The notes beneath the pieces were generated by a model. That model was not told the DNA's origin and did not search any database. It worked only from the letters and a program-made list of their open reading frames with translations. 53,346 bases of DNA, taken from NCBI GenBank assembly GCA_001643675.2, contig LSRY02000080.1, forward strand, positions 1 to 53,346, written 5' to 3'. Each line of letters opens with the position of its first letter. Within the stretch, counting starts at the first letter, position 1. This document shows, piece after piece, positions 1 to 46,791 of this stretch. This stretch comes from Monocercomonoides exilis PA203. Its lineage: Eukaryota; Protista; Preaxostyla. A program made the position numbers and the translations under genes.

Positions 1-3000
1 AAAATGATTATGCTTTTTTAAAAAAGCCTTTTCGCCATAAAGTGTTCGTTTGTGAAAAATCAAAGGTAAATTATTTGTACCGAGAATTATGAATGAAAAA
101 ATTTCGATTACAAATAAATCACAGATTACAAAAATGCACCACTGATATTTGAAATATTAATAGTGAAATCACAAAGTTTCTCATTTTCATACGGAATGTT
201 TTTTTTTTTTTTTATTTTTTTTGTTGTTTAATAGAATTGCAATTCGTAATTGGATTATTACCTATTTGCTAATTCTTTTGGAGATAATAGGGTCATATTT
301 CAAATATGGTTTTTTTTTGGCACTTTTTTGTTTGAAGCTTCCAATAAATCAAAAATCCATTATTCGTGTCGGCACATATTCAACACTTTTATGTAAGAAA
401 TACACTATAATTCACTGGCTTGTTTTTTTATTTTTATCTATAACACATTGAGATATTACAATTTTTTGGTAAAAATCCAAGTGACTTTTTATAGTCAACG
501 AAGCCTTTTTCAAAATTTTAGAGTTTTGTTTTTGAAACCACACACATTTCCCATTTTTTCTTCAAATTCTTTTATTTGACACTTTCTATTTTGTTGATAT
601 TTTCGCATTTTATTAAATTATCAAGGAAATAATCATTAAAGAGTGAGCATGTGGAAAAAATAAATGAGTTAATTAAAAAAAAATTATATTAGAAGATACA
701 AAGAGGAACGAAATTCATAAAGTTAAAAAATATCATCCCAGTTCTTTATCAATATAATTCTTTATTTTAAGTTGGCATACTGAAACTAAAAGGACATCAA
801 TGAAAATTCGCGATTATCACTTATTCCTTTTCCTTATATTATATTAATGAACAATTGAAGGTTTTTTCATCAGAAACGAAAGGATTTCAGACGATGAGAA
901 ATAAAGAAAATCCAGTTTTTCTCATAAATAATGGAATGATCAAAAAGAATTTGTTCGACATTTTTCACTATTGCTTGAATGTCATGCATATCAGAATCTT
1001 ACAAACAATTACACTCCATTTTCGAGAGGTTTTTATTTGAAAGCAGTGCAATAGGCTTTCTTTTTGAGAATGTAATTCTTGTCAAACCCCTAAAATGCAA
1101 AAATGGTCATTCAAACATTTTAATTGTTTCTGAACATGGATGCAAATCTAATTATTCATGTTCCACGAGCAAAAAAAGAATTTTAATCCGTTCTCGAACG
1201 ATTTCTGTTCGATCACTATGAAAAAATTTTCCTATTTTAATATTGTCTTATTGTTTTTGGTATCATATCAGTAACACTCAAGCTTCATTCATATCAGGTG
1301 TTGAAGTCCATTCTGTTGGTGCATTTTACAGTATATTCAGAAGAGCTTGCTCGATGTTTTTATTCAAAAATCCAAGAACGATAGGAGGTCCTGGCGTTGA
1401 GGTGGAAATTGATGAATCGGCTTGGCGGAGAAGGAAATATAAAAGAGGTGTGATTCATTCACATATTTTTTTTATAATTTCAAAAAATTGTTCTAGGGAA
1501 AAATAAGAAACTTATTTGGCTTTTCGGGGCAATTGAACGTCAAAAATCAATTGGATCAAAACATTCAATGGTAGCTTTTTTTGTAGGAAGGCGATCAGCA
1601 AACGTGCTTCTTCCTCTTATTCAAAAAATAATTAAGCCAGGTTCAGTCGTTGTTTCGGATCAATGGAAAGCATATTCCAAACTCTCTGAATTAGGATATA
1701 TCCATCATACTGTTAATCATTCAAAAGAATTTGTGAATGTAAAGGGAGAATCAACGAACACTATCGAAGGATCTTGGGCCCACTTACGCCGTTACATGCC
1801 TCCATTCGGAGTGAAATATACTGATCTGGAAGAGTATCTGTATGCGTATTTGTATCAGCATCATGAAGATAAAAATTTTTTGGAATTCATGAAAATTTTG
1901 GTTTTTTACAATGAAAATGAATATCACGAAGTAAACATTTACGTCACACGAACGTTTCATATCCACGTCAGTCAGTTTCGTCCCACAGTTTTTCACAAAA
2001 AAGAAATGTTTATATTTATGAAATTTATTGAATTGTTTTTCTTTTGAAAGAATAATTATTTGATATTCATTCTTTAATGATATATGTTTTTTGATCATTT
2101 ATTTATGAATAAAAAAATATTCCACACTCATCCAAATTGAAACCATTTAATTTGTCAGGATTTTCCATAATATAATATTTGAAGTTGTAAATTTTTATTG
2201 ATGAATATTTGGATGAATAAAAACGAGTTTGTCCATATAGAATGTGATATTTGTTTTTCATCTGCCACATCCTTGTCATTTATTGAAAATTTCTCTTCCA
2301 CAACTTATGAAATTCTCTGTGTGATTGTTTTTCAATTTTAATAGCGTTTGTTTATGTTTTCAGTATATTGACTCATTATTGTTTGAATATTTAAAAATCA
2401 ATCAAAGACAGCAATTGTATTGAAAGATTTTTCATGGAATATTAATTCGTTGTGGAAAGTTCATATTTTTTTTATCCTTATTTCTCAAAAAAGCTAATTA
2501 TTTTATCTGAAGCTCTTCTGACATAAAGACACAAACAGGTTATTTCCTTTCTATTCACTTTAATTGAATAAGCTGAACGAAATTCATTCAATCTTTTTTT
2601 TATGATCGTTTCATTAAGACAAGAAATTAATAGCTGTTTTCTCTTCGTTGAAAGTTAAGATCTTGTTTCCGCTATTTTCATTTTGATTATCAATCTTGTT
2701 TTGTTTGTTAACAAACATTTCATTGTTATATCACATATTTTCCCAAGCAAACGAATAAATTTTAATCTTGTTTGAAAGGATAGATTCAAATGTCTGTGTG
2801 TGAAAGCTTTTTATCTTTTTTTCTCATAAATCTTTGAATAAAGAACTGTAGAACAAGTTTATATTTGAAAGATAAAGAATAAAAGAAATAATCTTTGCGA
2901 AATAACATTTAACATTATGAAAAAAACACAACCGAATGAATATTAAAAGAAGAAATGTGAAGCTTGCAGTTTTAACTTATAATATCAAAAAACAATTCTA

Positions 3001-3310
3001 TAAATCAAAAAATAAAATGCATCACTTCTTTGACAACTTTCTTTTTTTAAATTCAACGGTTTATAACAATTGAACTTTGGTTTTTTTTTCAATTTAAAGC
3101 GGTTTCATTATTTCTGAATTCAATTAATTCTGAATTCTTTATTAAATGATTGGATAGCAATATGATTAAAATTATTTCTTTCTAATTCAAACAATATTAA
3201 TTTCACAGTTCTTTGCTTCAGTTCTTTATCTTTCTGTCGTCATTGTTTGTTATATACAAAACTTCATTTCAAAAAATAAATATATTCACCTTTCCGCACA
3301 TTCTCGATTG

Positions 3311-3657
3311 CTTTTTTCTCTTTCTGCGCCTTCACTTTTGCTTCCTTCTCTTTCTGCGCCTTCACTTTTGCTTCCTTCTCTTTCTGCGCCTTCACTTTTG
3401 CTTCCTTCTCTTTCTGCGCCTTCACTTTTGCTTCTTTCTCTTTCTGCGCCTTCACTTTTGCTTCCTTCTCTTTCTGCGCCTTCACTTTTGCTTCCTTCTC
3501 TTTCTGCGCCTTCACTTTTGCTTCTTTCTCTTTCTGCGCCTTCACTTTTGCTTCTTTCTCTTTCTGCGCCTTCACTTTTGCTTCCTTCTCTTTCTGCGCC
3601 TTCACTTTTGCTTATTTCTCTTTCTGCGCCTTCATTTTTGCTTCCTTTTCTTTCTGA
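3311..3657 (-). repeat. 30-bp minisatellite, 11 units, coding KAQKEKEAKV on the minus strand
   Basis: Unit ttctctttctgcgccttcacttttgcttcc counted directly. One GAA>TAA change at about 3612-3614. Confidence 0.97.
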
Positions 3658-3987
3658 GCTTTTTCAATAAAGGCATTTTATTAAAAATCTTTTGAATAGT
3701 TTATTTCAAACAATTTTATATTGTTATTTGATCTTTGATTTTGATGTTTAATTTCTTTCAAACAAAAAGAGCAAAATAATATATTATGTATTCAAAGTCC
3801 AACATCACACTGTGATTGCCTTTTTCACAAAGTTTTCAAAATCAGATGTATGAAAAGTTTTTTTATTTTGAACAGTTTGCTTATTCAACGGTCGCATTGT
3901 TGACTAAAATTACAAAACTTGAATGCATGAGATGAAAAACTGTCAAACGTTAACAAACGAAACATTGCATTACAAAAAAAAAAACAA

Positions 3988-6834
3988 TCACAAACGCATG
4001 AGTGTGTTCAAAGAAATCAATGAAAGAGAATGTCTTCTATCTCCAACAATTCTTCTTGCCTTAGAAAACATTCGTTCACAAAAGGCTTCACTGCATGGGG
4101 ATGCAATTAAATTGAAGGCAAAATTAGAATAAACAGTTTCCACATCACCTTTCAGAGCCAGCTCTTCGTAATAGACATATGGATCGTCCTCAATAACAGC
4201 ATCATCTTGAACAAGCAAACTTCTTCGAAAAAGTGCTTTGCATCCTGAAATAAGAATATCATTCATTCCTTGCAAAATGATATTTATTGCTTCGTTGAAG
4301 GCAACAGTTAGTCGAGGATACCAATCATCAAAAACGGCTTTGTGAATTTGCTCCAACGCTTCATTTTCAATTGTTGAATCACATTGCAATATTCTTTTCC
4401 TTGACGAAAAGTTTCCAAAGCAGAGAATATCATCTTCATTGGCAAATGATATTTCGCACTCTCGTCTTATTATTTTATCTTCGTTACTATTTTCCTTTTC
4501 TGCATCATTTTCTTCTTTGTCTCCAGCTATTTTTTTTTCATCTTTCGCTCCAGTTGTATTTCTAGTGCTGTATGTTGAGACGTTTTCTTTATCTGAAAAT
4601 GATTCTGAATTGTTTTCGAAATAATCTTCATCATTTGAAGAAAAACATTCACCACTTTCGAATTCTTCTTCTTCCATATCATATTCTAATTCTTCATAAT
4701 ATCCATCACTTTCGCTTTCATCTTCTTTTGCAATTTCCATTTCGGTTTTTCAATATGATCAATAATTTCTTGAACAAATTTCATTATTTCTGAGCAATTT
4801 TTTATGTTTGCAAAGTCGGTTTTGCTTGGGCAAATCAATGTTGATGAAGAATACAATTGTTGTGTGCGTAAACTTAATCGATTCTGAAATCTTTCCATTG
4901 CTGTTTTGACATGAAGAATGTCAAAATGAGTTAAATTTGGAGCAGTTGAGTTCGGCTGTGAAGATGCAGATATAGATGGAATTGAATTTGATAAAATATT
5001 AGTTGAACAAGAAATGAGCAGTGGAGACATTTGTTGTTGAATATGAGAGGATAACAGAGAAGAAGAAGAATGTGTTTGAGTTGAAGATAATTGAAATGGG
5101 ATTGTAGATGACGAGGAAGTTGGCTGAGAATAATTTGAAGATGGAAATGATTTGATTAATGATTCAATCGCATTTGATGAAGATGGAATATTCGATAAAT
5201 TGTCCTTTATTAAGCTTTGGTGCTTCGAAATATCAGAAAATATTATATCGCAATTTGTGAACAAACCTTTTCGATATTTTCCTGCTCCAATTGGTGAAAG
5301 AGCATAAACAAAGGCAAAAAATCTGCCTCTTTCTCCAGAAAATGTGTAGTTGAAAAGCAGAATGATAATGTCTGTTATTGCATTGTGCCAATCTTTCTGT
5401 TGAAATATATTCAATGTTGAATAATAGAAAAATAAGCTCATTGCATTCAATAAAATGGGAAATACAAAAGATAGCTTTGTGGAGTCTTTTTCGAATTGGA
5501 GATGCAAATAGTTAATCGGAAATAGTAAAAGTTCTGTTATTCCAGCAGCTTTAATGTTTTCTTCATTCAGTAACTTGCTCAAACGGACCCTTTGGATATT
5601 TGTCCTAACATAATTGCATATTTGAAATAAACACAACCACCTTGTTCGGATAAAAGTCGGACATTTCCGAACCAATATTTTACGATTGACCGTTGAATGC
5701 GATGCAGTGCTGAAATTAACGAGCATTTCTCTCACATTGTTCAAGAATTTATTATCTTGAAATGCGTGACTGATGATCAAATTCACCAGATGATTCAAGC
5801 AAGGAACGAAAATAGGATTAAACAACGACAGACCGACAGCATGTTCCATTGGAACCTTGTTAAACGATTGGCACAATTTTGTGAGTGCTTGAACCTGCGA
5901 TTTCAAGCCATCAGAACAAAAACATCTGACATTTGAACCAATTTTTCCAAACTCAATCAACAAAGTCTGACCAAGTTCGAAGTAATCTTTTTCAGTTGAG
6001 CAGCCTTCAAACAAATTGAAGAACAAAGGAACAGAATTAAAAGATAATGGCACAACTCCAACAACTGTGTAATTTTTGTTTCCAATTTTCCCGCTGTCCA
6101 TCATAATTGCAATTGGTTTATTTCTAATTGTTGACAATAAATTAGTTACCTTAGAATCATTTGTTTGAAGAATGATTTTTGATATAGATTTTCCAGTTAA
6201 ATAGGGGAATATGTCTTCTCTCTTTGAATGAGGATGTGACTGAGACTCTTTTATTAAAGTGGTTATGAAATCGTTCAGGAAACTGCAGGAAGATTTAAGA
6301 AAAGATATGTTACAAGCACCCACTAATGAAATGAATGTGTCCACTAATTCATAACCAGTTTTGCAAAATTGTTCGCTGTGTGTATCAACTGTATATTTTT
6401 TATTATCCATGCCAATTTTTGCACTCAGGAAAAATCTCTGAATTGAGTTCTGCTTTAGCAACTTGCATTTGTGAAATTTGATTGATGAGTAGTCTCTTCT
6501 TCCTGTAATTCCACATATTGAATCAGATGTTGCATTTGGGCACAAATATAAACGATGGTACATTTTTTTATCTGATAAGCTGAGAAAAACAGGAGAAAAT
6601 CCAATAAACAAATTGTTATTCACCACTTCAAATGCAATTTTGCTGAGGGCTAAATTCTTGTTTGTCGGATGTTTATAATCTTTGAAGTGACAAATTTGAA
6701 CAAAAAATCAAACATAATGTTAAGATCATTATTGCAAACATTGCCTTTTTGGAGTTAATTGCAACTTCTCCAAAGTGATGATATGCCCTTTCTCCATTTG
6801 CAAAAGTTTCACATGCTTTATATATGCTGTGCAC
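3988..6834 (-). CDS. hAT transposase of copy A (ORF-track pieces 4686-6626 and 3988-4740; 1-bp homopolymer shifts near 6705 and 4745)
   Basis: IAIMMDSG (D1), FCSDG (D2), CLNH (CxxH), TRW and SEAFCERMFSKA (E, in the C-terminal hAT domain), plus a Cys/His BED-like N-terminal segment. The 5' exon is unresolved. Confidence 0.85.
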
Positions 6835-7906
6835 TTGAAAAAGAAATATTTTATTTTGATAAAACAGTTGATAACAAGTTAATCAGAAAAAATTTCAAAC
6901 CACATCAGGATCTTTTAAGCTCAGTTTGAGTTCATCATTCAATTCGAACGTTGACAATAAGTCTTCTCGATCCATGGTTATATAATAATCAACAAATCTA
7001 CGTGTGACAGGAACTTTTTTTCTTCCGTGTCAGATTTTTCAAAAATCCGCAATTCAAATATGCCGCGGAACAACCCATTTTGATTTTTTTGGAAGTATAC
7101 ATTTCCCTTTTGAAAAAATGTTGTTCATGTTTTATTCATTTTTTTAATTGTATTTATTAAATCCTTGTGCATTGAACTATGACGTTAAAAACTTTTCTCC
7201 GTAAGTCACATTGGCTTTTCAAAAAAGTCAAAGGCAGATTGCCGCAATGGTTTATCACGAAGAACTCAGAAAATTCTTTCCAGATGATGACATCGATCAA
7301 GATCCTTCAGAAGATGAGATATCATCAGATTCATCAAACAATTTCGAGTATGAAAAAGATGATATAATTGATGACGGAAGTGGAGCAAGTGACTGGTCAG
7401 ATACAGAAATGACTAAAAAAAGAACGAAAGCTCTTCAATAAATCCATTTCATTTTTTACTTTCATGACACAATTCAACTTATAAATTAAACCATTGCGGC
7501 AATCTGCCTTTGACTTTTTTGAAAAGCCAATGTGACTTACGGAGAAAAGTTTTTAACGTCATAGTTCAATGCACAAGGATTTAATAAATACAATTAAAAA
7601 AATGAATAAAACATGAACAACATTTTTTCAAAAGGGAAATGTATACTTCCAAAAAAATCAAAATGGGTTGTTCCGCGGCATATTTGAATTGCGGATTTTT
7701 GAAAAATCTGACACGGAAGAAAAAAAGTTCCTGTCACACGTAGATTTGTTGATTATTATATAACCATGGATCGAGAAGACTTATTGTCAACGTTCGAATT
7801 GAATGATGAACTCAAACTGAGCTTAAAAGATCCTGATGTGGTTTGAAATTTTTTCTGATTAACTTGTTATCAACTGTTTTATCAAAATAAAATATTTCTT
7901 TTTCAA

Positions 7907-10704
7907 GTGCACAGCATATATAAAGCATGTGAAACTTTTGCAAATGGAGAAAGGGCATATCATCACTTTGGAGAAGTTGCAATTAACTCCAAAAAGGCAA
8001 TGTTTGCAATAATGATCTTAACATTATGTTTGATTTTTGTTCAAATTTGTCACTTCAAAGATTATAAACATCCGACAAACAAGAATTTAGCCCTCAGCAA
8101 AATTGCATTTGAAGTGGTGAATAACAATTTGTTTATTGGATTTTCTCCTGTTTTCTCAGCTTATCAGATAAAAAATGTACCATCGTTTATATTTGTGCCC
8201 AAATGCAACATCTGATTCAATATGTGGAATTACAGGAAGAAGAGACTACTCATCAATCAAATTTCACAAATGCAAGTTGCTAAAGCAGAACTCAATTCAG
8301 AGATTTTCCTGAGTGCAAAAATTGGCATGGATAATAAAAAATATACAGTTGATACACACAGCGAACAATTTTGCAAAACTGGTTATGAATTAGTGGACAC
8401 ATTCATTTCATTAGTGGGTGCTTGTAACATATCTTTTCTTAAATCTTCCTGCAGTTTCCTGAACGATTTCATAACCACTTTAATAAAAGAGTCTCAGTCA
8501 CATCCTCATTCAAAGAGAGAAGACATATTCCCCTATTTAACTGGAAAATCTATATCAAAAATCATTCTTCAAACAAATGATTCTAAGGTAACTAATTTAT
8601 TGTCAACAATTAGAAATAAACCAATTGCAATTATGATGGACAGCGGGAAAATTGGAAACAAAAATTACACAGTTGTTGGAGTTATGCCATTATCTTTTAA
8701 TTCTGTTCCTTTGTTCTTCAATTTGTTTGAAGGCTGCTCAACTGAAAAAGATTACTTCGAACTTGGTCAGACTTTGTTGATTGAGTTTGGAAAAATTGGT
8801 TCAAATGTCAGATGTTTTTGTTCTGATGGCTTGAAATCGCAGGTTCAAGCACTCACAAAATTGTGCCAATCGTTTAACAAGGAACATGTGGGTCTGAATC
8901 ATCTGGTGAATTTGATCATCAGTCACGCATTTCAAGATAATAAATTCTTGAACAATGTGAGAGAAATGCTCGTTAATTTCAGCACTGCATCGCATTCAAC
9001 GGTCAATCGTAAAATATTGGTTCGGAAATGTCCGACTTTTATCCGAACAAGGTGGTTGTGTTTATTTCAAATATGCAATTATGTTAGGACAAATATCCAA
9101 AGGGTCCGTTTGAGCAAGTTACTGAATGAAGAAAACATTAAAGCTGCTGGAATAACAGAACTTTTACTATTTCCGATTAACTATTTGCATCTCCAATTCG
9201 AAAAAGACTCCACAAAGCTATCTTTTGTATTTCCCATTTTATTGAATGCAATGAGCTTATTTTTCTATTATTCAACATTGAATATATTTCAACAGAAAGA
9301 TTGGCACAATGCAATAACAGACATTATCATTCTGCTTTTCAACTACACATTTTCTGGAGAAAGAGGCAGATTTTTGCCTTTGTTTATGCTCTTTCACCAA
9401 TTGGAGCAGGAAAATATCGAAAAGGTTTGTTCACAAATTGCGATATAATATTTTCTGATATTTCGAAGCACCAAAGCTTAATAAAGGACAATTTATCGAA
9501 TATTCCATCTTCATCAAATGCGATTGAATCATTAATCAAATCATTTCCATCTTCAAATTATTCTCAGCCAACTTCCTCGTCATCTACAATCCCATTTCAA
9601 TTATCTTCAACTCAAACACATTCTTCTTCTTCTCTGTTATCCTCTCATATTCAACAACAAATGTCTCCACTGCTCATTTCTTGTTCAACTAATATTTTAT
9701 CAAATTCAATTCCATCTATATCTGCATCTTCACAGCCGAACTCAACTGCTCCAAATTTAACTCATTTTGACATTCTTCATGTCAAAACAGCAATGGAAAG
9801 ATTTCAGAATCGATTAAGTTTACGCACACAACAATTGTATTCTTCATCAACATTGATTTGCCCAAGCAAAACCGACTTTGCAAACATAAAAAATTGCTCA
9901 GAAATAATGAAATTTGTTCAAGAAATTATTGATCATATTGAAAAAACCGAAATGGAAATTGCAAAAGAAGATGAAAGCGAAAGTGATGGATATTATGAAG
10001 AATTAGAATATGATATGGAAGAAGAAGAATTCGAAAGTGGTGAATGTTTTTCTTCAAATGATGAAGATTATTTCGAAAACAATTCAGAATCATTTTCAGA
10101 TAAAGAAAACGTCTCAACATACAGCACTAGAAATACAACTGGAGCGAAAGATGAAAAAAAAATAGCTGGAGACAAAGAAGAAAATGATGCAGAAAAGGAA
10201 AATAGTAACGAAGATAAAATAATAAGACGAGAGTGCGAAATATCATTTGCCAATGAAGATGATATTCTCTGCTTTGGAAACTTTTCGTCAAGGAAAAGAA
10301 TATTGCAATGTGATTCAACAATTGAAAATGAAGCGTTGGAGCAAATTCACAAAGCCGTTTTTGATGATTGGTATCCTCGACTAACTGTTGCCTTCAACGA
10401 AGCAATAAATATCATTTTGCAAGGAATGAATGATATTCTTATTTCAGGATGCAAAGCACTTTTTCGAAGAAGTTTGCTTGTTCAAGATGATGCTGTTATT
10501 GAGGACGATCCATATGTCTATTACGAAGAGCTGGCTCTGAAAGGTGATGTGGAAACTGTTTATTCTAATTTTGCCTTCAATTTAATTGCATCCCCATGCA
10601 GTGAAGCCTTTTGTGAACGAATGTTTTCTAAGGCAAGAAGAATTGTTGGAGATAGAAGACATTCTCTTTCATTGATTTCTTTGAACACACTCATGCGTTT
10701 GTGA
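7907..10704 (+). pseudogene. hAT transposase of copy B (four 1-bp losses and a 45-bp in-frame loss removing the CxxH Cys)
   Basis: ORFs 7907-8215, 8222-9448 and 9301-10704 match copy A. KVPMEHAVGLSLFNPIFVPCLNHL is reduced to KEHVGLNHL. Confidence 0.83.
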
Positions 10705-11034
10705 TTGTTTTTTTTTTTGTAATGCAATGTTTCGTTTGTTAACGTTTGACAGTTTTTCATCTCATGCATTCAAGTTTTGTAATTTTAGTCAACAATGCGA
10801 CCGTTGAATAAGCAAACTGTTCAAAATAAAAAAACTTTTCATACATCTGATTTTGAAAACTTTGTGAAAAAGGCAATCACAGTGTGATGTTGGACTTTGA
10901 ATACATAATATATTATTTTGCTCTTTTTGTTTGAAAGAAATTAAACATCAAAATCAAAGATCAAATAACAATATAAAATTGTTTGAAATAAACTATTCAA
11001 AAGATTTTTAATAAAATGCCTTTATTGAAAAAGC

Positions 11035-12009
11035 TCAGAAAGAAAAGGAAGCAAAAATGAAGGCGCAGAAAGAGAAAGAAGCAAAAGTGAAGGCGCAGAA
11101 AGAGAAGGAAGCAAAAGTGAAGGCGCAGAAAGAGAAGGAAGCAAAAGTGAAGGCGCAGAAAGAGAAAGAAGCAAAAGTGAAGGCGCAGAAAGAGAAGGAA
11201 GCAAAAGTGAAGGCGCAGAAAGAGAAGGAAGCAAAAGTGAAGGCGCAGAAAGAGAAGGAAGCAAAAGTGAAGGCGCAGAAAGAAGGAAGCAAAAGTGAAG
11301 GCGCAGAAAGAGAAGGAAGCAAAAGTGAAGGCGCAGAAAGAGAAGGAAGCAAAAGTGAAGGCGCAGAAAGAGAAAGAAGCAAAAGTGAAGGCGCAGAAAG
11401 AGAAGGAAGCAAAAGTGAAGGCGCAGAAAGAGAAGGAAGCAAAAGTGAAGGCGCAGAAAGAGAAAGAAGCAAAAGTGAAGGCGCAGAAAGAGAAGGAAGC
11501 AAAAGTGAAGGCGCAGAAAGAGAAGGAAGCAAAAGTGAAGGCGCAGAAAGAGAAGGAAGCAAAAGTGAAGGCGCAGAAAGAGAAGGAAGCAAAAGTGAAG
11601 GCGCAGAAAGAGAAGGAAGCAAAAGTGAAGGCGCAGAAAGAGAAGGAAGCAAAAGTGAAGGCGCAGAAAGAGAAAGAAGCAAAAGTGAAGGCGCAGAAAG
11701 AGAAGGAAGCAAAAGTGAAGGCGCAGAAAGAGAAGGAAGCAAAAGTGAAGGCGCAGAAAGAGAAGGAAGCAAAAGTGAAGGCGCAGAAAGAGAAGGAAGC
11801 AAAAGTGAAGGCGCAGAAAGAGAAAGAAGCAAAAGTGAAGGCGCAGAAAGAGAAGGAAGCAAAAGTGAAGGCGCAGAAAGAGAAGGAAGCAAAAGTGAAG
11901 GCGCAGAAAGAGAAGGAAGCAAAAGTGAAGGCGCAGAAAGAGAAGGAAGCAAAAGTGAAGGCGCAGAAAGAGAAGGAAGCAAAAGTGAAGGCGCAGAAAG
12001 AGAAAAAAG
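11035..12009 (+). repeat. 30-bp minisatellite, 32 units, coding KAQKEKEAKV
   Basis: Counted as 8 units, a 2-bp deletion near 11281, then 24 units. Confidence 0.97.
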
Positions 12010-13538
12010 CAATCGAGAATGTGCGGAAAGGTGAATATATTTATTTTTTGAAATGAAGTTTTGTATATAACAAACAATGACGACAGAAAGATAAAGAACT
12101 GAAGCAAAGAACTGTGAAATTAATATTGTTTGAATTAGAAAGAAATAATTTTAATCATATTGCTATCCAATCATTTAATAAAGAATTCAGAATTAATTGA
12201 ATTCAGAAATAATGAAACCGCTTTAAATTGAAAAAAAAACCAAAGTTCAATTGTTATAAACCGTTGAATTTAAAAAAAGAAAGTTGTCAAAGAAGTGATG
12301 CATTTTATTTTTTGATTTATAGAATTGTATTTTGATATTATAAGTTAAAACTGCAAGCTTCACATTTCTTCTTTTAATATTCATTCGGTTGTGTTTTTTT
12401 CATAATGTTAAATGTTATTTCGCAAAGATTATTTCTTTTATTCTTTATCTTTCAAATATAAACTTGTTCTACAGTTCTTTATTCAAAGATTTATGAGAAA
12501 AAAAGATAAAAAGCTTTCACACACAGACATTTGAATCTATCCTTTCAAACAAGATTAAAATTTATTCGTTTGCTTGGGAAAATATGTGATATAACAATGA
12601 AATGTTTGTTAACAAACAAAACAAGATTGATAATCAAAATGAAAATAGCGGAAACAAGATCTTAACTTTCAACGAAGAGAAAACAGCTATTAATTTCTTG
12701 TCTTAATGAAACGATCATAAAAAAAAGATTGAATGAATTTCGTTCAGCTTATTCAATTAAAGTGAATAGAAAGGAAATAACCTGTTTGTGTCTTTATGTC
12801 AGAAGAGCTTCAGATAAAATAATTAGCTTTTTTGAGAAATAAGGATAAAAAAAATATGAACTTTCCACAACGAATTAATATTCCATGAAAAATCTTTCAA
12901 TACAATTGCTGTCTTTGATTGATTTTTAAATATTCAAACAATAATGAGTCAATATACTGAAAACATAAACAAACGCTATTAAAATTGAAAAACAATCACA
13001 CAGAGAATTTCATAAGTTGTGGAAGAGAAATTTTCAATAAATGACAAGGATGTGGCAGATGAAAAACAAATATCACATTCTATATGGACAAACTCGTTTT
13101 TATTCATCCAAATATTCATCAATAAAAATTTACAACTTCAAATATTATATTATGGAAAATCCTGACAAATTAAATGGTTTCAATTTGGATGAGTGTGGAA
13201 TATTTTTTTATTCATAAATAAATGATCAAAAAACATATATCATTAAAGAATGAATATCAAATAATTATTCTTTCAAAAGAAAAACAATTCAATAAATTTC
13301 ATAAATATAAACATTTCTTTTTTGTGAAAAACTGTGGGACGAAACTGACTGACGTGGATATGAAACGTTCGTGTGACGTAAATGTTTATTATAAATATCA
13401 AAAACTATAATATTTACTTCAAAAAAATTTTTTATTAAAAAATGACTGATGTGCTCCAAGTTTCATTATGCCTTTAAGTTTTTCAAAAAAATCTGCTAAT
13501 GAAAAAAGTTAGATAAAATCGTAATATGTACATAACAT

Positions 13539-13742
13539 GGCTAATCCTTTTTGAAACAATCCTTTTGCTCGAGTTTTGAACAAAAAATTATAATTTTTTG
13601 TGGGAACACTTTTTCAAAAGTGTATCGATTATGTTAATTGATAGATATTATAATCTCAACACACTTTTGAAAAAGTATTCCCACAAAAAACAATTTTCTG
13701 TTCAAAATTTGAACGAAAATATAGTTTAAAAAAGGAATAGAC
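13539..13742. mobile_element. MITE-like imperfect hairpin (about 85-bp arms)
   Basis: ctaatcctttttgaaac...tttttgtgggaacactttttcaaaagtgt pairs with acacttttgaaaaagtattcccacaaaaa...gtttaaaaaaggaatag. No clean TSD seen. Confidence 0.65.
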
Positions 13743-13798
13743 ACAAAAATAATAAAAGGAAGCAAAATATAAATATCTGATCTTCAGAGGAAATCAAT

Positions 13799-16700
13799 TT
13801 ACATCCCCACTGCTTTTTTCATAATTAGAGGAATATCAGCAAGAGAATTAATAAAATGGCTTTTCTCTTCATTTTTGAATGGAGTTAAAGAAAGGAATTG
13901 AGAGGATATACATTCTCCTTCTTCAACACTATTTAGGGCTTTTGATGTAATTTCTTTAAAACTTTGAACTTCTCTTCTAACCAATGAAGTGCAAAGCTTT
14001 TGCTCGGGGAAAAGAATATCTTGAATCTTGCGAAACGGACTCGTAAATGAAGCATATCTGTACACATCATCTGCAGCAACGTCGTAAACACAAAACAATT
14101 TTTCCTTCTTTTCTTTTTCAATGTTTTCTTCTTCTTTTTTCGAAGTTTCATCACACCCGATGCTTTTTTCATCTTCTCCATTCTCAAAATGACAACACAA
14201 AAACGGCCGCTCCCAACACACTGTCACAGAACACACATTATTCGACTGACGATACGCAAGTTTCTGAGTTGTCCGTACTGAAGAGCTCAAGGAATCACAT
14301 GAATTTTCCAAAAGCGGTTCGATAAGGAATGGATGGTCGCACGGAATCGAAGAGTGCTTATAACCCCTTGTAGAACATCTGGAACAGTCAACTGCATCGC
14401 TTCCAACAGCAGGTGTTTGAAGAACCTTTGCATGCATTGGGCATATGTCGTAGTGAGAGGGGGTGGGGTATGCTGAGGCAACAACTCGGCCTAACGTCCC
14501 AAAAGGAACGAGTCCAGTTGCAGCAACTGACACAACACGATCACCGATGCGCAGCTGCCCGCCAGCTGTGTCGCTTCCATCGTAAGTAATACTGCGAATC
14601 GCAGAAACAAGGCACTTTGGATGTATTGAGCATGTCACCTGAATGCGCGCTCCTTTTGCTTTTTCGTTCTTTGAAAGAACGTCAGTTGAAGAAGATGGCA
14701 AGCCTCTTTCATTTTCATCACAAGTGAAAGTATTCTTCAACCATCCACTTTCTTTCTCATATCTGTCCATCACATTCATCCCCATTTTCGTAAGTTTCAT
14801 TGAAGTGCATTTACCGGCTTTTGTTCCAGACTGCTTGAACATCAACTCCATCTTCTCATTCTTCCAACTTTTGAATCTTTTCATTTCTTTCTCTTCATCG
14901 ACAAAACCGAACAAGGAAGAAGCATCACATTCCATCTTGTGATTTGGAATTGAAGTGAATACTTCACACAAATTAAACACATTTGGAAATTCCTTTTTGT
15001 ATTCCTGCAACATCTGCATCGCTAAACTCGAGTATTCTGCACAGCCCTTCATCGGATTGAAACGCGCATATGGAGGAGAGTGAATGTTTTTAACTAGATC
15101 AATGAATGGGAATGATAAAGTTACCTCTGAAACATAGAAAACTTTCTCTACATCCGTTTTTTTATCCTCTGGCAGATCTCTTTGGTTATTTGCATTTGAA
15201 TTCCTTCGAATTCTTTGCTCTTTACACCAGATTTTAATAGCAGATTCAGAACCACTATAATCCTCAATCTTCTTTTCAACAACTCCATTCAATCGGTCTG
15301 CATGGAAACATCCTTTGTAAACGCGATAAGCATCGATAATCAACTGACCTCTTTTCTCGCGTTTTCCGCTATTTCTTTTCCTGAAGCGAATTCTCTTTGT
15401 GAGTGTTAAAGAAAAGTTAGGCATTGTTAATATAAGAATGGTTAAATGAGACACGTGTAATAACTTTGAAACTTCATCCACATCAAACCATAAAAATGAA
15501 GATGGCAAATAGGAAGAAAGAAGATTTGGATAAAGTGAATATTTTGGAGGAAGAATAGTCAGTTTTGTGCCACTTTCTGCTGATCTTTGGCTCAAAATTT
15601 CTGAATGCAAAAGAGTAAATGGAATATTGCTGAATAAGCTTGCTTCTTTCCCTGAAATTTGTTCCTCAAATGCATCAAATTCAACCTTTATTATCACATC
15701 TTTATTTTTATCATCCGCATTTGCTTTCATATTATCTCTGTTTTCAACCATTAATTCTTTATCTGTCGCATTGCAAACACTCAAAACAGATCCAGATGCA
15801 GTCAGAAGAGCGAGTGGATGAGGAATAGAAGAGATAGAAACAGGAACAAGCTCTCCTGAATCATCTCGTCTTGATACAGAAAGGACACTCAGATTGCTTC
15901 CACAAACGCATATTACATCGCTTGGAGACAAAGACGGGGTTTCAGTCGGAAATGATTGAAAGGCTACAAGTTGCTGTTTCAATTCAGCTAATTGTTCTGA
16001 CGTCGCATTAACTGTTTCAGCAAACGAAGGGATTGCTGATATTAACTGTATTGGCACACACATTGCATCACCCACGTTGTATTCAGCAGAAACCACTTCT
16101 TCATCATAATCATAGATGTCGTTGAGCATGCTTTCACTATTAAATTTTTCTTTTCCATTTCCCTTTTGTGGATTCCAAACATCACATATCCCAATCTTTC
16201 CGTCTGTTGCAGATCTTGTAGAGTAAAAACCATACAGTCCCTTTTCCAGTCTTCTTTGTGCTCTCTCCAAATCTGCTTTGCTCACCTCTTCTCCATCAGC
16301 TCGACTTCTCTGTACCAATTTTTCGGCTTCTGCGTAATTTAACATAAATTTCTTTTTTTCATATTTGAAATCATTATCATCATCATCATCATCATAGTCT
16401 TCATCTTCTTCAACTGTATCATTTGGATTTGTATATATTCCCCAACTTTGGTATTTATTTTGTTTCTGTAGCTCATCGTTCATTTCTTTTTCTTCCTCCT
16501 CCACTCTCTTCATCTCGTCTTCTTTCATTGCTCTTCTCCTCTTTCTCCATCCTTTTTTCATTGAGCACAAAGGGTGCACATAGCACAAAATACTCGATGT
16601 CTTTCCCACATCAATGCCTTGCTTTTCAAACTTATTTTTAACGAACAAGAATCTACTTCTAAAACATCCATCAGAAAGTGGCTGAAGAGGAACAGAACGA

Positions 16701-18622
16701 GCAATCAAGCGAGCAAAAAGAGAAGGGCAGTTCAAAGAAAGAACGTAATGAATCTGAAGAATAGATTTAATGAAGGAAGCAGACAAACAAGTGCTTTTTG
16801 ATCGTTTGGCACGAGGTGTTCCTCTGTTGAAGCTTTTGTTATCATAACTTTGGGATTCGAATTGCGCTTGCGTTCGTGAAGCAGATGCAGTGGCGGAATA
16901 TGGAAAAGAAGTCGAAGGAGAAGGAGAAGAGGAAGAAGGAGAAGAAGAAGGAGAAGAAGAAGATGACGATGAGGGAGAGGAAGGAGAGGAAGGGGTTATG
17001 GAACGAGGGGAAAGAGAAGGGGATGTGAAGGAAGAAGAAGAAGAAGAAGAAGTAGAGGAAGAAGAAGAATCTTTCTGGTTTTTTGGAAAGCAGCACTGTG
17101 ATTGCGAGTGGTCAGATGGAGAATGAGATTGGGAATTTTGATTTCTCATTCCAGAAAAATTTTCAAGTCTCTGAGTATTTTGATGTGGCGAAGGGGGTAC
17201 GCATAAATGCTGTGATTCTTCTTTACAAGTTTCTTTTGTCTGCACTTCATTCAGTGTTTCATTGCTGTCCATGCTGTCTTTTGAATCATCAAACAATTTC
17301 ACTTCGTTATCATCTATCTCTTCATCGAAATCATCATCATCAGCATCTTCTTGACTTTTGTTGTGTTTATGTCTGAGCGTTTCATTCTTCCACATTGCTT
17401 TCATTATCTCGCAAAATATTGCTTCCTCTTCCCTTGCTTTTTTCCATTCTTTGTATTCTTCCATTGTTTGTTCATCAATGTCTTCACAAGAACCAAATCC
17501 AGATAGCTCTGAAAGTCTTTCTTCTTTCATTTTACTCTTAAATTCATCCATCTTTCTCTCCAATCTCCTCATTTTCAGTTCTTCCTCTTCTTCCCTCTCG
17601 CTTGCCATCGGGTCGAGGACAAAACTAATTCCCGGCGCATCAATTCTGTACACTCTCGCTGGAATCAAATGGGGATAAGAAACATAGCACACACACCCAA
17701 CAAGCAACCGAAGCACATCACTGACCATCTGAAGTCGTGAGGAACATGAAAGAGAGGCAAAAGAACGAGGAAGAAAAGTTCTTAGATCAAGTTTCGTTAA
17801 CGAAGAAGAGTGAGATAACATCTTTGTCATTTCTTCTTTCAGCTTTTCTTTCTCCTCTTTTTCATCGTCTTCATCGCTTTTCTTTGAGGAATCTGTATCC
17901 ATATCTGTATTTTCCTCGATCTTGCTTGATTTATCAAACATTTTTCCATTCATTTTCATCGCGCCGTCATTCTCATCCTTCGCCTCTCTTCTTCTGTTCA
18001 CATCTTTTCCATCTTGAAGTTGTTGATGCAGCTTTTGCTGTTCTCCTAAGTTGTTGATTTTTTGCTCTTCAAGTCTTTCTCTCTTTTCAATGCTTTCATG
18101 TTGCTCTTTCGTCTTCTTTGTACTCTCCTCTTGCACATTTTCATTATCCATTTTTGTGAAAAGAAGGTTTCCTACACAAATAATCGGTGAGGTACAATCC
18201 GAGTCGTTCGAAAAAGAATTCATCTTCTTATTTTGATTAAAGGCAGCCTGATTTAAAAGAGATTTGCTAAAGCAGTCAATTTCTCTCAATATTTCTTCTT
18301 TTTCTTTTTCTCCACTTCTATTTGCTTTTTCTTTCTTCGGATTCTCTTCTTTTTGTCCTGTCAAATAGGGAGAATTCGTTAAGCAACTCACACTTGGAAC
18401 TGTCATCGGTATCCGATTGGCTGCTGAAGATGGCAAAGGAAGTGAATGTGAGAAGAAGAACGAAATAGAAGGCTTGCGCAGAACATAAAGCGACGAAAAG
18501 CCAGAACGAAGATAAGAACCAGGAAGGAGCTTTGACTCAAATGGAATGAAATTTTCTCTCCAAGACTCGATCGAACCTGAACATGAGAAGATATAAAAAA
18601 AAGTGTTACGCCAATGGGATAT

Positions 18623-18674
<52 letters not shown>

Positions 18675-18754
18675 TAGATAGATAGATAGATAGAGATAGA
18701 GATAGAGATAGAGATAGAGATAGAGAGAGAGAGAAGAGAGATAGAGATAGAGAT

Positions 18755-18813
<59 letters not shown>

Positions 18814-21800
18814 ATTTATTATTTAGCGTTCGAATAAATATTAATAAATAAATAAATAAAAATAATTTTCAAAAGTGTTAATCAAAATTTCAAAAAATAA
18901 AACCAAACCTGAAGTTGAGTATGTCTTCAAGTCGTATTCATCTGTCTCCTCAAGCGGCAAATCTGAATGGGGCTCTGCTCTGAACACCACAACTCGACAT
19001 TGCTTGAGTGAAGGGAAAGTCAGAGTTGCAGAAGCAGGCGAATCGGGGTACAGAGGCGGCTCTAGCAAACGAGACGGATATGCTGCCTCTATCTTGGCCT
19101 CTTCTTCATTCTCAATTGACACAAGCTCTTCGTTCAATTTGTTTCGGATGTCTAATTTCCTTTCTTCATCATCATTTTCTTTTTCCTCTTCTTTTCCCCC
19201 TTTCTCTTTCACTCTTTTATCTTCCTCCTTTCTCCACTTCTCAATCGCCTCTTTCCTCTTCTCCATTGCTTCCTCTCTAATCCTCTCCATTTCTGTTTTC
19301 CTCTCCGGATGCTTCGGCCCCATTAAAACCAGGTTCCATTTTATTTGATTGCGCTTCATTTCTTCTTTGCTGACTTTCGGATAAAGCTCTTCTGCAGCTT
19401 TGATGACAATAGCTGGGTCAATAAGCGGAAGAAGGGCAATCGATCCTATATGAAGTGAAACAATCTTTTCTCGGTCTATGATATCGTCTGTTGGGAGAGG
19501 CTTGAAAGGAAGGAAAGAGGAAGAGGAAGAGGAGGAAGAAGAAAATGAAGAGGTGGACGATGAAGATAATAGTGCAGAAGATGCATTTGTTTTAGAAGCT
19601 GAGAGACCATTCTTACCTTGTTGCATATTCTCAACACACGATCTTTCCTTTCTATTCTCTTCTTCTTCTTCATCTTTCCATATCTTATCATCCATCGTAT
19701 ACTTCACCAGCGCTTGCTTATTTCTTTTTAAAAATCTATCGGGCGTGAATCCATTGTCAACATATAGTGTGGAATCAATGTATTTTGAAAGCGGAGAAGA
19801 AGAAGAATTCAACAAAGATCGAAGAGGCTGGGGAAGAATATGTGAATAGATTGGATGCAGCACAGAAAGCAGCTGCTCGAAAGGACGAAGAGGTTGACTA
19901 AGTTCAAAGGGATAGAGCGAGTCTGCAATGATGACAGGGAAAACAAGGAACAAAATGAAAAATGATAAAAGATAAGCAGAATGAATTCAAATCGAAAGGT
20001 AGTGGAAGCAAAAAAAAATTTTTTTTCGTTTTTCGAAAAATAATCATAAAATAGTTTTCAAAATGTCATTTCAAATAGAATTTTTTGAGGAGATAAGAAG
20101 AGAATGAAGAGGAAGAGGTGAAAAAAGACAAAGACAAAGATGAATGCAAAAATTTGGGTGAAAAGATTAAATATATTGCATCAAGTACTCTCGTTGGGAA
20201 TAAGATATTCTCTAATTCCTTCATTCGATTATTCCTTTCATCGTCTTTCTTTGAAATTATTTTTTATTTCCTTTCTTTTAATAATTATTACAAGCAAACC
20301 TATTTTATCTTTCTCCTCGCATTCCTTCCTTCCTCTCTCAAACTTTTCTGTGAACTGCGAAAGACACACAAGATCGCTCAGCAAAGGAGGATAAAAAGGA
20401 GAATAATGATAATTCCAGGAGGGGCAGCCACGCGTGTAATACAAAAAGACGAATTGCACAGCGGTGATGTAATCAGAGACAAGATTGAACAGAGGATGGG
20501 AGTTGGAAGAAGAAGAAGAAGAAGAAGAAATTTCTTTTTTTCCTCTTCCTCTTTTCTTTTTCTTTTCCTTCTTTTTCTCTTTCATCTTTCCTCCATCTTT
20601 TTCTAAAATACCCATTGATGCATCACATGAAGAAGAACAAGAAGAAGAAAATGATGATGATGATTTATCTTTTCCATTCGCTGTTTCGTTATCATCAATA
20701 GATCTCTTTATTTCAGCTGCTTCTCTGAGATCTGGCAGTGGTAAAGGGAAATGGAGCTTCATTTTGTAATACATTTCTCTCCAAGTGAGATCAGCAAACT
20801 GAGTTGGTTCTGTTAATGAATGGAAAGATAAAGAATCAGAAGAAGAAGGAAATTGAAGCGATGATGGATTTCTTGTCCCATTTCCCCTCATTCGCGGAAA
20901 CATCAAATCACTCACAGTTTTGCTCTCCTCCTTCGCCAACTTCTGGCAGATCGCTTCGAATGCTCCCCAGTCTGTCACCCACCCCCTTTCTGTGAGAAAT
21001 GAGTGCATTGTCGGAAGAACCTCTTTGTAGGCAGTCAGGATCTTTGGAATCGCACGTTTACAGACTTCCAGCGACACAATACGGGGAATGAAGTCGTTTC
21101 CGAGGAGAAAGCAGAGGAGCACGAAATCGTCAAGCACTCGCTCAAAGTCAAAGTGGAAAGATAAAAGATGTTTTGAGGAAGAGTTGGAAGAAGAAGAAGT
21201 GGTAGCAGTAGAAGAAGAAGATGATGTTGACGAAGAGAATTCAGATGCATGTGTTACTTCTTTCTGAGAAGATGGAACATTTTGAGCTTTTTCTGATGTT
21301 TTGATATTCGTTCTTGCAACATTTTTTGTTTCATCCAAAGCATTTCTTCCTTTTTCCTCTCTTTCTCTACCGAATCTTCTGTTCATGCTGTTGTCACTGT
21401 CAACTTTGTCATCGTGCATAAACTCTTTGAACCACATCCCCAAGTATTCTCTGAGAATGTTGATGTGCAGAAACTGCAGCTTCATGCGGTGGTTCAAGCC
21501 GAGCTGAGGGTTGTTATTCGACGAACCATTAATCTCTCGCAAAATCACAATGTTTCGCTCGTGTGTCAGCAGTGCCAGCATTATTAGATCTGCATCTCGT
21601 CCGAATATGCAGTGCGATGTGGACGGGTCGTAGCCCTTCTCCCGCCTCTTGTTGCGGATGAATGATATGATTTTGTGTTCTCCTTCGCCTGGAACATCGC
21701 TTCCGGAGATAATCACCTTCAGCCCTTCCCACGCTTTATCTGTACTCATTCTCATCTGCGCATAGTATTTCACCCACTTTTTCAGTTTGCGCATAAGGTT

Positions 21801-22534
21801 TGTTCCTGGCATGACGCAGTCTTTGTAAAGATCGTGCTTTCCTTTTTCAATTTCACTGTGAGTCTCTTCAACCATTACAGCTTCAAATGCAGATAAATAC
21901 CACCCTCGTCTTTGAGGGCGCACTTTTGTCATTGGTGCAACTCCTACATTGTTATTTATTTATGAAAATTTCAAAAAAATAATTCTTCAAAATAATTTGA
22001 AATCAAGCCATCCATGGCGAAATAAACAAGCTTCTTCGGCCTGGCAGCTAGAAACAATCTGTCGAATGTTCGAAATACTTCTGCCATAGCTTCTTCTTCA
22101 GGGCATTTACTTTTTAATAATAATTCATTCCGAATAATATCAAGAGCAATTTCGTTAATATCCAAGTATAAGTTATCTTTCAAAAAATAGTGAAAAACGT
22201 TAAAATTAAAAATGAGGTAAAAAAATACAAAAATAAATAAAAAAATAAAAAATACAATAAAAAAATAAAAAATAAAACATTAAAACATTAAAAAATTGAA
22301 AATTGAAAAATTGAAAAATTGAAAAATTGAAAAATGTGAAATGAAAAAAATAAAATACAAAAATAAATTCCAAAAATTTGAATAAATCGGAAAATACCGA
22401 TATCAGGAGTAGATAAAGGATCTACTGGTGAAAATATTAATGGATAATGTTCACTCATCCATCTATCATATCGCGTAATAAACTCAAATAAAGCTAAATA
22501 CATTATCACACTTAAGCAGATTTGGTACTCCCAT
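13799..22534 (-). CDS. XRN1: XRN1-family 5'-3' exoribonuclease, 6 exons (22534-22512, 22462-22398, 22176-22009, 21943-20300, 19922-18909, 18576-13799), about 2563 aa
   Basis: MGVP..W.SEHYP, DNLYLD, FAMDGVAP, SDVPGEGEHKI, GRDADL, LGNDFIP, GCPSW, PFEQLLSVL and the C-terminal IGDRVVSV..GLVPFGTLGRV typical of XRN1. Exon lengths sum to 7692 nt, a multiple of 3. Confidence 0.88.
18626..18808. repeat. Compound (GA)n/(GATA)n/(GAGATA)n microsatellite in XRN intron 5
   Basis: Directly visible; lies within intron 18577-18908. Confidence 0.97.
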
Positions 22535-24260: not shown

Positions 24261-25286
24261 CAGTGAAATGTCCATCAACGTCACTCCATCTTTTTCCAAT
24301 TCCTCTTAATATATGCTTCAACAAAACAGCTATTTCCCTTTAATTTGTAGTCGAATATCCCATCTTGTCTTTTTTCCTCTTTTCTCTCTCTTCTTTTATT
24401 TCGTTCAAAATCTCCACTTCATATTTTTCTTAGGAAAATGTTTTTCATCATTATCATCACTCAAAAAAATGAACTTTTTTATTTTCATCCAGTTTTCCGC
24501 ATCCAGAGGTTTTCTATTCCAACTAAAACCACTTTTCATTTTATTTCAAAAAATTGCATATTGAATTAAAAATCATAAATAAAATTATTCATTAAAACAT
24601 CCTCATATTATTATGCACTCTATTTGAAAGCAAACAATTGGCTTGATTCCTCGCTGTTGTGCTCTATGAGATTAAACTAACCAAAAAAAATTGTCTAAAC
24701 TCATAGTCTTGGAGAGGCAACAGACAGAAATATCTTTACAATCAATAGAACAATGTAAATAACACACATTTTGTCTTTTTGTGTTATTGATGAAATTGTT
24801 ATATTCCATCTGGCCATCCAATCTCCAAAATTATCAAATAAAATTTCAAAAATATTGCATAACCACCATAGTTTGTTATCTCCACAGGAAATAATATTTC
24901 TAGTTCTAAAGATAATGTTCACTCAAGGAATCTCAATCGGTGCTTGAATATTCAATTTCAAAGAAAACAATTCGATCAATGAATCCATTACAAATAAAGA
25001 CACATTATAAAGCATTGCTTTCTCCATTATCTTTTGATAAAAATGTCAATAAAAGAAAAAACAGTGTGAATGAATATATTTTTATATCTTGTTTGGTTTC
25101 CTTTTTCCATCTAATTCTTCTACAAAATATATATTCAAAATCAATTTTTATGGCTTAATGGTGTTGTTTTCTGAATGCAATGTTTATGAAAATGCAGGAG
25201 GCGAACAACACAAAAAATTCTCTGGTGTGCAATTGCAGTTGCAAACGAATTCATGTTAATGTGATCATTTCAAATTTTATAAAGAA

Positions 25287-26600
25287 TTGTTTTCTGAACT
25301 AGAATGTTGCAATAAGGAAGAGCAGAAATGGAAAATTGAAGAAATTAATGAAATGATGGAAGATATGGACAAAGAGGAAATTAACTTTGTTTTAACCAAA
25401 AAATTGTTCGATAAAATGAACAATATGATTGAAGAAAAGAAATTGTCTGTTGAAAATGCTATTTTGTTGCTAAAGCACATGGGATATTTTAATGTGTTGA
25501 AAGGTACATTTAATTTCGATTTTTATCGTTCTATATTGAACAAAAGATTTGAGAAAATGCTTGTTGATGAAAATAAGAAAAATGAAGAAAAGAACGAAAA
25601 GCTACTGGCAGATTTTTGCGAATGCTATCTTTTGCTTAACGAAGGAATTTCTTCAAAAACGCTTTCAATCAGTGTGCCTTGTCTTCTGAAAGTTGGATTA
25701 AAGAAAGAGGAAAGCGAAGAAGCTCAAAAAGAAGTGGAAATGGCGTTGCTTGCTTTAAGTAATATTAACTTATCATGGGTAAGGAATTGTTTTTGTAGCT
25801 TTATTTTCATCATCAATTTTTTCTTTAGAATTATCAGAGAGTGACAAAAGAATTGTATTTCAGTGAGATTACAGAAATCATCGAATACCATCAGGAACAC
25901 AGAAATCTGACACGACTTGCCTATCAATCAGCTTGGAAGTTTTTGATTAACAGATTGGACAATGACAAAGGCTTGGAAGAAATAATTATAAATGAGCTGC
26001 ATTTTGTGGAAGAGGCTGCAAGAGAGTTGAAAGAATTGACAAGAAATGCGGATTGGATGAAAACAGAAGAGAAAGATGGAGGAAAAGATGCAAAAGAAGT
26101 ACATTTTCTCATTAAATGGTTCAATGTTATTTATAAATACTTATACTCCTGCAACTCGTGGAACAAAGGAAATGTTGGGTTAATATGCTGCGTTGTGAAC
26201 TTGTTTCGAACAGTGAAAGACGATTACAGAGAAATTAGTGTTTTATGCTCTGATTTCTTTGGAGATGCAATGAGAAGCAAATCTGTCAAAGTTGATGATT
26301 TGTTGAAAGGCGAAGCAATTGATCTATTTTGGAAAAATTATTCAATCAACATTGAATGACAAAATGACATATGTACACCTGCTACGCTTCATGAATGTTT
26401 CAAGGCAGTTGAAAGGGAAGGAGAATGATGAAAAGAGGAATCGAAAAGAAAGACCACAAAAAAGAAAGGAATTGGAAAAGATGGAAGAGGAAGGACATGA
26501 AGACATCATCACAAGCTTTCATGAAATAATAGATTTTCTCAACAGAAAATATCACCGTCAATTATCAACAAATATTTCTGATTATTTTGTATATGTTTGA
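25287..26600 (+). pseudogene. Lineage-specific expanded family protein, paralog 1 (intron 25779-25828; frameshift near 26330)
   Basis: Aligns with 29707-31062 (EEKNEKLL, QKEVEM.LLALSNI, YHQ.H.NLT.LAY..AWKFLI, K.EE.G..D.I.S, SD.FV) and shares its phase-0 intron position. Start uncertain; the frameshift may be a sequencing error. Confidence 0.7.
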
Positions 26601-26693
26601 GACAACGAAGCTCATTATTTATTTTCACTCTGAAATTATAATTTTACCCTATCATTTCACAATTTACAATCAAAATTTGTTGAACATTTTTCT

Positions 26694-46500: not shown

Positions 46501-46791
46501 GGAGCGCGGTGGGACTTTTCGACGATGCAGCTGGCAGAAGCGCTGCCAGGGGAAATGTTTGCAGCGATGCCTGTGATCCACTTTGTGCCTCAGAAGGACT
46601 ACAGCCCCCCGCCAGCATGCTATGTTGCTCCACTCTACAAGACCGCCCAGCGCCAGGGGCAGCTGTCGACGACTGGACAGTCCACCAACTTCATCACCAC
46701 TGTTGTGCTCAGCACACTCCTCCCCTCTGACCATTGGATCCTTCGTGGAGTGGCGCTGCTGTGCGAACCCAAAATGCTTTCTGACAGCTGA
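31564..46791 (+). CDS. DNAH6: Axonemal inner-arm dynein heavy chain, DNAH6-like (short 5' exon(s), then one ~14.9-kb exon)
   Basis: P-loops GPAGTGKTE, GPTRGGKT, GETGVGKS and GVGGCGKQS; WFCFDEFNRI, QQKHYDFGMRA, coiled-coil stalk, WVFLQNCHL and HWILRGVALL. The subtype is inferred from the P2/P3 pattern and the NPYD-containing tail. The start codon is tentative. Confidence 0.9.

Follow-up and report, generated by a model that had tools for sequence, protein, structure and literature searches.

The 53,346-nucleotide window analysed here is the whole of contig C81 (LSRY02000080.1) of Monocercomonoides exilis PA203; contigs C10 to C65 named below belong to the same assembly. Near its left end the window holds a Merlin DNA transposon into which two copies of one hAT element have inserted in opposite orientations. 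The origin that we consider likely is a recent local hop, in which the hAT element gave rise to a second copy 232 bp away inside the already dead Merlin while the donor was kept. The 232 bp is the distance from hAT end to hAT end, counting both inner copies of the target-site duplications (TSDs).

In the nest, the preliminary description had reported three perfect and distinct 8-bp TSD pairs, and all six 8-mers were found in place, each abutting an element end. The probability that a given 8-mer turns up again by chance at a set position is 8e-5, 9e-6 and 2e-4 for the three 8-mers. The matching terminal inverted repeats (TIRs) described with them are present at all elements, but they are imperfect (21/26 matches in the Merlin, 8/11 and 11/16 in the hATs), as is typical for both families. 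When both hATs and one copy of each of their TSDs were excised, a 1458-bp Merlin with a frame continuous across the first insertion site was recovered, as had been proposed. Searched against the genome, this rebuilt empty Merlin aligned from base 1 to 1458 with three uninterrupted sister copies (1457-1458 bp) on C33, C11 and C10, at 94.8%, 91.4% and 90.7% identity, respectively. The hAT target 8-mers TCACGAAG and TTATAAAT each occur singly in the sisters (the latter as TTTTAAAT in C11) and are thus true target duplications. The sisters have flanking 8-mers of their own, perfect in C33 (ACATCTGG) and matching at 7/8 positions in C11 and C10, so that four different 8-mers flank four Merlin copies. 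An origin of the 8-mers as element-internal sequence was ruled out, since they are single in the sister Merlins and the sister flanks differ. Uninterrupted sisters with single 8-mers and other flanks also place the Merlin first and the hATs later, and two separate transposase-made insertions into the Merlin are supported by these observations. Together, the hATs form a single inverted repeat of 11.5 kb (1932-13388). The coordinates are collected in the table.

Features of the nested Merlin and hAT elements in contig C81 (positions in the window)
Feature	Position	Strand	Remark
Merlin TSD, left copy (TTTAAGTT)	766..773		sister copies flanked otherwise
Merlin 5' part	774..1931	+	left TIR 774-799; PF12762
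hAT copy 1 TSD, left copy (TCACGAAG)	1924..1931		native Merlin coding sequence
hAT copy 1, full length, 5323 bp	1932..7254	-	
30-bp minisatellite, copy 1, 11 core units	3290..3662	-	3' non-coding arm
hAT transposase frame, copy 1, 906 codons	3988..6707	-	one missing A, homopolymer about 4746-4750
hAT copy 1 TSD, right copy	7255..7262		
Merlin middle part (spacer), original orientation	7263..7478	+	acidic C-terminal tail; stop codon 7439-7441
hAT copy 2 TSD, left copy (TTATAAAT)	7479..7486		native Merlin 3' untranslated sequence
hAT copy 2, 5902 bp, opposite in orientation to copy 1	7487..13388	+	
30-bp minisatellite, copy 2, 32 core units	11030..12030	+	628 bp longer than that of copy 1
hAT copy 2 TSD, right copy	13389..13396		
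Merlin 3' end	13397..13472	+	right TIR 13447-13472
Merlin TSD, right copy	13473..13480		

The two hAT copies are 99.77% identical over 5273 aligned bases, and 172 columns, including a change in the right TIR, are common to both but differ from the older copies on C58, C48 and C27 alike. Apart from the pair, the narrow hAT family consists of four older long copies that are 85-91% identical (C58, C48, C27 and C36) and one 1053-bp fragment at 98.1%, and a third full-length copy of the young lineage was not found in the genome search. If insertion were random, the second copy would come to lie within 232 bp of the first with a probability of about 6e-6. Because this chance proximity is tiny and no closer donor was found elsewhere, local transposition with donor retention is favoured, in agreement with the recent local hop put forward in the preliminary description. 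The age of the insertions can also be bounded from the host. Compared with the C33 copy the Merlin is a mosaic, with 18 differences in the 3' ~860 bp and 54 in the 5' 600 bp; since both hAT targets lie in the young 3' half, the insertions are younger than the split from C33, corresponding to less than about 2% divergence.

The transposase frame of copy 1 is stop-free over its 906 codons once one missing A is counted; this base is present in copy 2 and in the four sisters, and its absence is probably a sequencing error. Relative to the older sisters, the ratio of nonsynonymous to synonymous substitution rates (dN/dS) is 0.33-0.49, and there is no private stop. The motifs of the frame comprise a D near 6098, a D near 5912, CxxH at 5801-5790, RW near 5642 and the catalytic E near 4077. 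Outside the 30-bp minisatellite, copy 1 shows a derived state at a single homopolymer, while copy 2 does so at five homopolymers (one-base losses) and one substitution, a second substitution, at 12329, being of uncertain polarity. Copy 2 also has a garbled stretch at 8883-8894 with a net loss of 45 bp, which removes the C of CxxH. The minisatellite itself lies outside the transposase gene, and one of its frames reads as a K/E/A/Q repeat; older hATs carry at most a few degenerate copies of the unit (one to three), which has thus expanded in the young lineage, to 11 and 32 core units.

How these arm differences are to be read depends on the assembly, which was made from nanopore data with Canu, Nanopolish and Pilon and comprises 82.3 Mb in 101 contigs (PMC8767320). 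Window positions 15601-53346 are repeated at ~100% over 37.9 kb at the start of C65 (G000:C65:2-37916), as seen in the search tables and, for the first 2.4 kb of C65, by direct comparison. These 2.4 kb contain 13 one-base losses relative to C81, one DNA having been assembled twice. C81 and C65 were left unmerged in the assembly; the former extends the latter leftward by 15.6 kb, and the two contigs can probably be joined. The assembly paper mentions a 'scaffold80-53332' that was corrected by hand; it is close to C81 in size and might be the same contig. Inverted duplicates cause missed base calls in nanopores (PMC7229812). Given this miscalling and the one-base losses between C65 and C81, the arm differences are not read as biology, and the arms may be identical in life. 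The idea that copy 2 is the gap-repaired donor, as judged from its derived changes, was dropped in view of the one-base losses of the same kind between the two contigs. The assembly ends 765 bp to the left of the nest and the C65 overlap starts 2.1 kb to its right; the hAT palindrome is a plausible cause of the contig break.

In the course of events that we propose, the 1458-bp Merlin first inserted and then decayed, as shown by its TSD, its sister copies and its stop codon. Next, a young hAT belonging to a large family of M. exilis elements inserted into the dead Merlin. This hAT would subsequently have excised and re-inserted 232 bp away in inverted orientation, with either copy as the donor. 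The donor could have been kept through a hop during replication, or through gap repair from the sister chromatid. The hAT itself may have supplied the transposase, which is possible because copy 1 is one homopolymer base short of an intact 906-codon frame. The outcome would be an 11.5-kb inverted repeat without a function of its own. Linked re-insertion with the donor retained has been described for Tol2 (PMC2753552), and an exact precedent is the rice locus OsRLG5-161, where a Ds element and its donor lie in opposite orientations at a distance of 1.1 kb, both bounded by 8-bp TSDs of their own (Xuan et al. 2011, PMC3239180). Both loci consist of two inverted, linked copies of one hAT with separate 8-bp TSDs, and the rice pair was made by a donor-kept local hop; pairs of this type were found in 0.7% of the lines screened at that locus (PMC3239180). 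The M. exilis pair differs in being natural, in having its copies only 232 bp apart, in lying inside another transposon in a protist, and in holding a nearly intact transposase gene. In 107 of 300 regenerated plants, the rice pair gave rise to deletions, duplications, inversions and inversion of the spacer (PMC3239180), whereas no rearrangement is seen in the M. exilis pair; its spacer is still in Merlin orientation and there has therefore been no net inversion. In geometry, the one property compared, the pair fits a chromosome-breaking inverted Ac/Ds pair. By analogy, a tendency to sister-chromatid transposition, breakage, spacer inversion and recombination between the arms is to be expected of it, and not one to clean movement as a Merlin composite.

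The assignment of the inner elements to hAT in the preliminary description was borne out by a profile match to Hermes, a Hermes fold, the D-D-CxxH-RW-E motif series, the 8-bp TSDs and the short TIRs. Pfam gave a single match, to the hAT dimerisation domain and below threshold, and single-sequence searches with the frame gave no match in PDB or in a 5.8-billion-entry set. An index-free search returned 207 relatives at 21-41% identity, those checked being unnamed metagenome or Logan proteins; beyond the genome itself, the closest proteins are metagenome sequences without names, at 25-30% identity. In the alignment of the relatives the D, D, CxxH, RW and a terminal SExxCERxFS are kept, with D, D, C, H and R invariant in 73 sequences. 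The profile matched Hermes with E 5e-21 (hmmsearch), with no other convincing match, and a Foldseek search with a model of the genomic relative on C36 had Hermes in all of its top 12 places (E 1.6e-9), well ahead of Mutator-like and P transposases; by this ranking, a P element or Mutator identity was ruled out. The homologues show an N-terminal C/H pattern that may correspond to a BED zinc finger; in copy 1, the N-terminal exon or exons would lie upstream of the 906-codon frame. The positions of the hAT ends are fixed by the four sister copies, and at the same ends older sisters have TSDs matching at 7/8 (C58) and 6/8 (C27) positions. The elements thus share with Hermes and other hATs the fold, the D-D-E triad, CxxH, RW, the C-terminal dimerisation motif, the 8-bp TSD and short imperfect TIRs. 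They differ in having 11-17% identity in structural alignment, a ~250-residue low-complexity insert before the last E, a Pfam match below the cut-off, and ends that start with TAAAC. From sequence comparison, they appear to be a deeply divergent hAT clade that is missed by Pfam and has no named relatives. The wider family occurs at a minimum of 68 places in the genome, many with open frames of 800-1000 codons; a second family member with an 816-codon open frame lies at C36:1069127-1071577, 2.4 kb from the end at which the C36 sister is truncated.

The host element is likewise confirmed as a Merlin. It matches PF12762 at 62.6 bits (cut-off 27; E 5.5e-17), and its DDE_Tnp_IS1595 domain has the D, D and E (codons near 1411, 1658 and 1766) as well as the EIDES, SDQWKAY and TIEGSW blocks. 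The superfamily is characterised by TIRs of at least 24 bp starting with GG and by 8- or 9-bp TSDs that differ between copies; here the TIRs are 26 bp, both ends beginning with GGCAT, and the TSDs differ as described above. As judged from the frame, the gene would consist of exon 1 at 979-1447 followed by a 49-bp GT-AG intron at 1448-1496, with 360 codons in total. Counted on spliced or frame-joined gene models, an in-frame TGA (1219-1221) lies upstream of the catalytic domain in the host copy, and the C33, C11 and C10 sisters have two stops each or frameshifts. All four copies of the family are thus broken, and the host has no intact transposase frame and is not autonomous. At least 150 Merlin-domain matches occur in the genome, many in open frames and belonging to other Merlin families, and upwards of 100 copies, falling into seven or more families, have been reported from M. 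exilis (Lopes et al. 2021, PMC8101967). The described Monocercomonoides families resemble the host in having 8-bp TSDs, 23-29-bp TIRs starting with GG, and pseudogenised copies with intact ends (PMC8101967); the word 'nested' is absent from Lopes et al. 2021 (PMC8101967). Two Merlins on C33 (649806-651262 and 661968-663700) lie 11 kb apart and are 76-83% alike overall, with a frameshifted exon 1 stretch that is near-identical by residue, which looks like local gene conversion. On C10, an inverted pair of Merlin left-end matches (1100116-1100165 and 1123973-1124022), 24 kb apart, may belong to a large element with Merlin-like ends.

Several points weigh against a local hop. Had the donor been remote and excised cleanly, no trace of it would be left, so that the hAT may have arrived twice from outside, and gene conversion from arm to arm could make the pair seem too young. 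In addition, the contig is short, with the Merlin only 765 bp from its left end and no merger with C65 on the right, and the nest was analysed in the assembled contigs. Two independent insertions from a donor elsewhere, with the dead Merlin acting as a safe and open hot spot and perhaps later conversion of the arms, would agree with the way in which transposons pile into one another throughout this genome, but we find such an origin quite unlikely: the closest candidate donor is the 1-kb fragment at 98.1%, the three sister Merlins are empty and the host family is thus no general hot spot, and the arms are alike to both tips without an older patch. That copy 2 was made by a nanopore fold-back or a chimeric read is very unlikely. 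An 11.5-kb palindrome on a short unmerged contig invites suspicion, as does the concentration in copy 2 of nearly all derived differences, mostly one-base losses plus one garbled stretch, a pattern expected for inverted duplicates passing the nanopore (PMC7229812). This pattern, however, accounts for the arm differences and not for the existence of a second arm, and a fold-back would neither start and stop exactly at the hAT tips nor keep the 232-bp spacer in Merlin orientation, nor could it duplicate a different 8-mer, single in the sisters, and then resume in the Merlin 3' end.

Two further readings concern what the nest does rather than how it arose, and local hopping of the hAT remains our preferred account of its origin. 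The preliminary description suggested that the Merlin ends bracket a 12.7-kb composite that could be moved in trans, for which we found no positive evidence. The two Merlin ends are no worse than their counterparts in the sisters, the TSD is perfect, the many open Merlin frames in the genome might provide transposase, and large Merlins exist, such as one of 9.75 kb with a perfect TSD on C27. Nevertheless, it is highly improbable that the unit moves, or has moved, as one Merlin composite. The tested junctions (the right-end query being 13150-13560, which includes the tip of copy 2) are unique to C81 in the one assembly, where hAT ends and empty Merlins occur apart, and no intact transposase of the host family was found. 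A perfect TSD needs no re-mobilisation; it fits the age of the copy because the equally diverged C33 sister, with an equal number of private changes (29), has one as well. What defines Ac/Ds macrotransposons and bacterial composite transposons is that the entire unit has been observed to move. Their outer ends bracket a large internal segment, as in the M. exilis nest, but for the nest neither the unit at a second site with a new TSD nor an excision product is seen in the one assembly. The inverted hAT pair cannot itself form a macrotransposon, because both of its outer ends are 3' ends. There is also only a slim chance that the locus is a hairpin-RNA silencer of the hAT family, similar to Mu killer, with the Merlin promoter reading through both inverted copies. 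The geometry fits, as a transcript from the Merlin 5' end would cross copy 1 in antisense and copy 2 in sense. M. exilis uses two polyadenylation hexamers (PMC8767320), and along the strand of such a transcript copy 1 has 22 matches to them, starting at 2108, which is a weak counter-argument in AT-rich DNA. The hAT genes, moreover, point away from the spacer, so that their own transcripts do not fold back.

The rarity implied for the nest was not upheld, as all four other long copies of the young hAT's family carry nested insertions. The C58 copy has one of 4.8 kb, the C48 copy one of 14.7 kb, the C27 copy two (9.7 and 6.6 kb) and the C36 copy three (1.4, 0.85 and 3.6 kb). Several of these insertions have clear TIRs and TSDs and some hold further elements. 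Two are Merlins inside hAT, the reverse nesting, one of them being the 9.75-kb element at C27:188301-198049, which has TIRs of about 180 bp and a perfect TATTTTTC TSD and holds a transposase frame of 643 codons, cargo and another TIR element. Nesting is ordinary in M. exilis, and the C81 nest is notable solely for how young the pair is and how nearly intact its transposase is. The nest reveals no new mechanism; DNA transposons are already known to nest, to hop locally and to form inverted pairs.

Around the nest, small palindromic multi-copy elements resembling miniature inverted-repeat transposable elements flank the Merlin on both sides (13538-13743 and about 290-625). In a search for a Merlin empty-site allele, the closest paralogous flank (C36) proved too diverged, its match ending ~30 bp to the left of the insertion point. 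An Xrn1-like 5'-3' exoribonuclease gene occupies 13799-21932 (-) in three frames and contains an AG/AGAT microsatellite (about 18626-18810); with four more paralogues at 77-84% on C36, C57 and C33 (two), its five copies are above the usual number. A member of a multi-copy family at 24600-26640 (+), with 68-72% matches on more than 25 contigs, has two short frames and no Pfam match. A dynein heavy chain of 4964 codons is encoded in a single frame at 31897-46791 (+), and a 94% copy of its last 2.8 kb is found at C11:103427-106255.

It is doubtful that copy 1 is at present an active autonomous hAT in the strain in culture and that the pair is a natural, still-segregating locus for chromosome breakage or hairpin silencing. 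If true, this would also explain the assembly breaks on both sides, and would give metamonads their first tractable example of alternative transposition, in a hAT clade without named relatives. As it stands, the nest marks a likely cause of the contig break, points to one of the youngest transposases of the genome, possibly still active, and provides a clean example from nature of local hopping by a hAT in an oxymonad.

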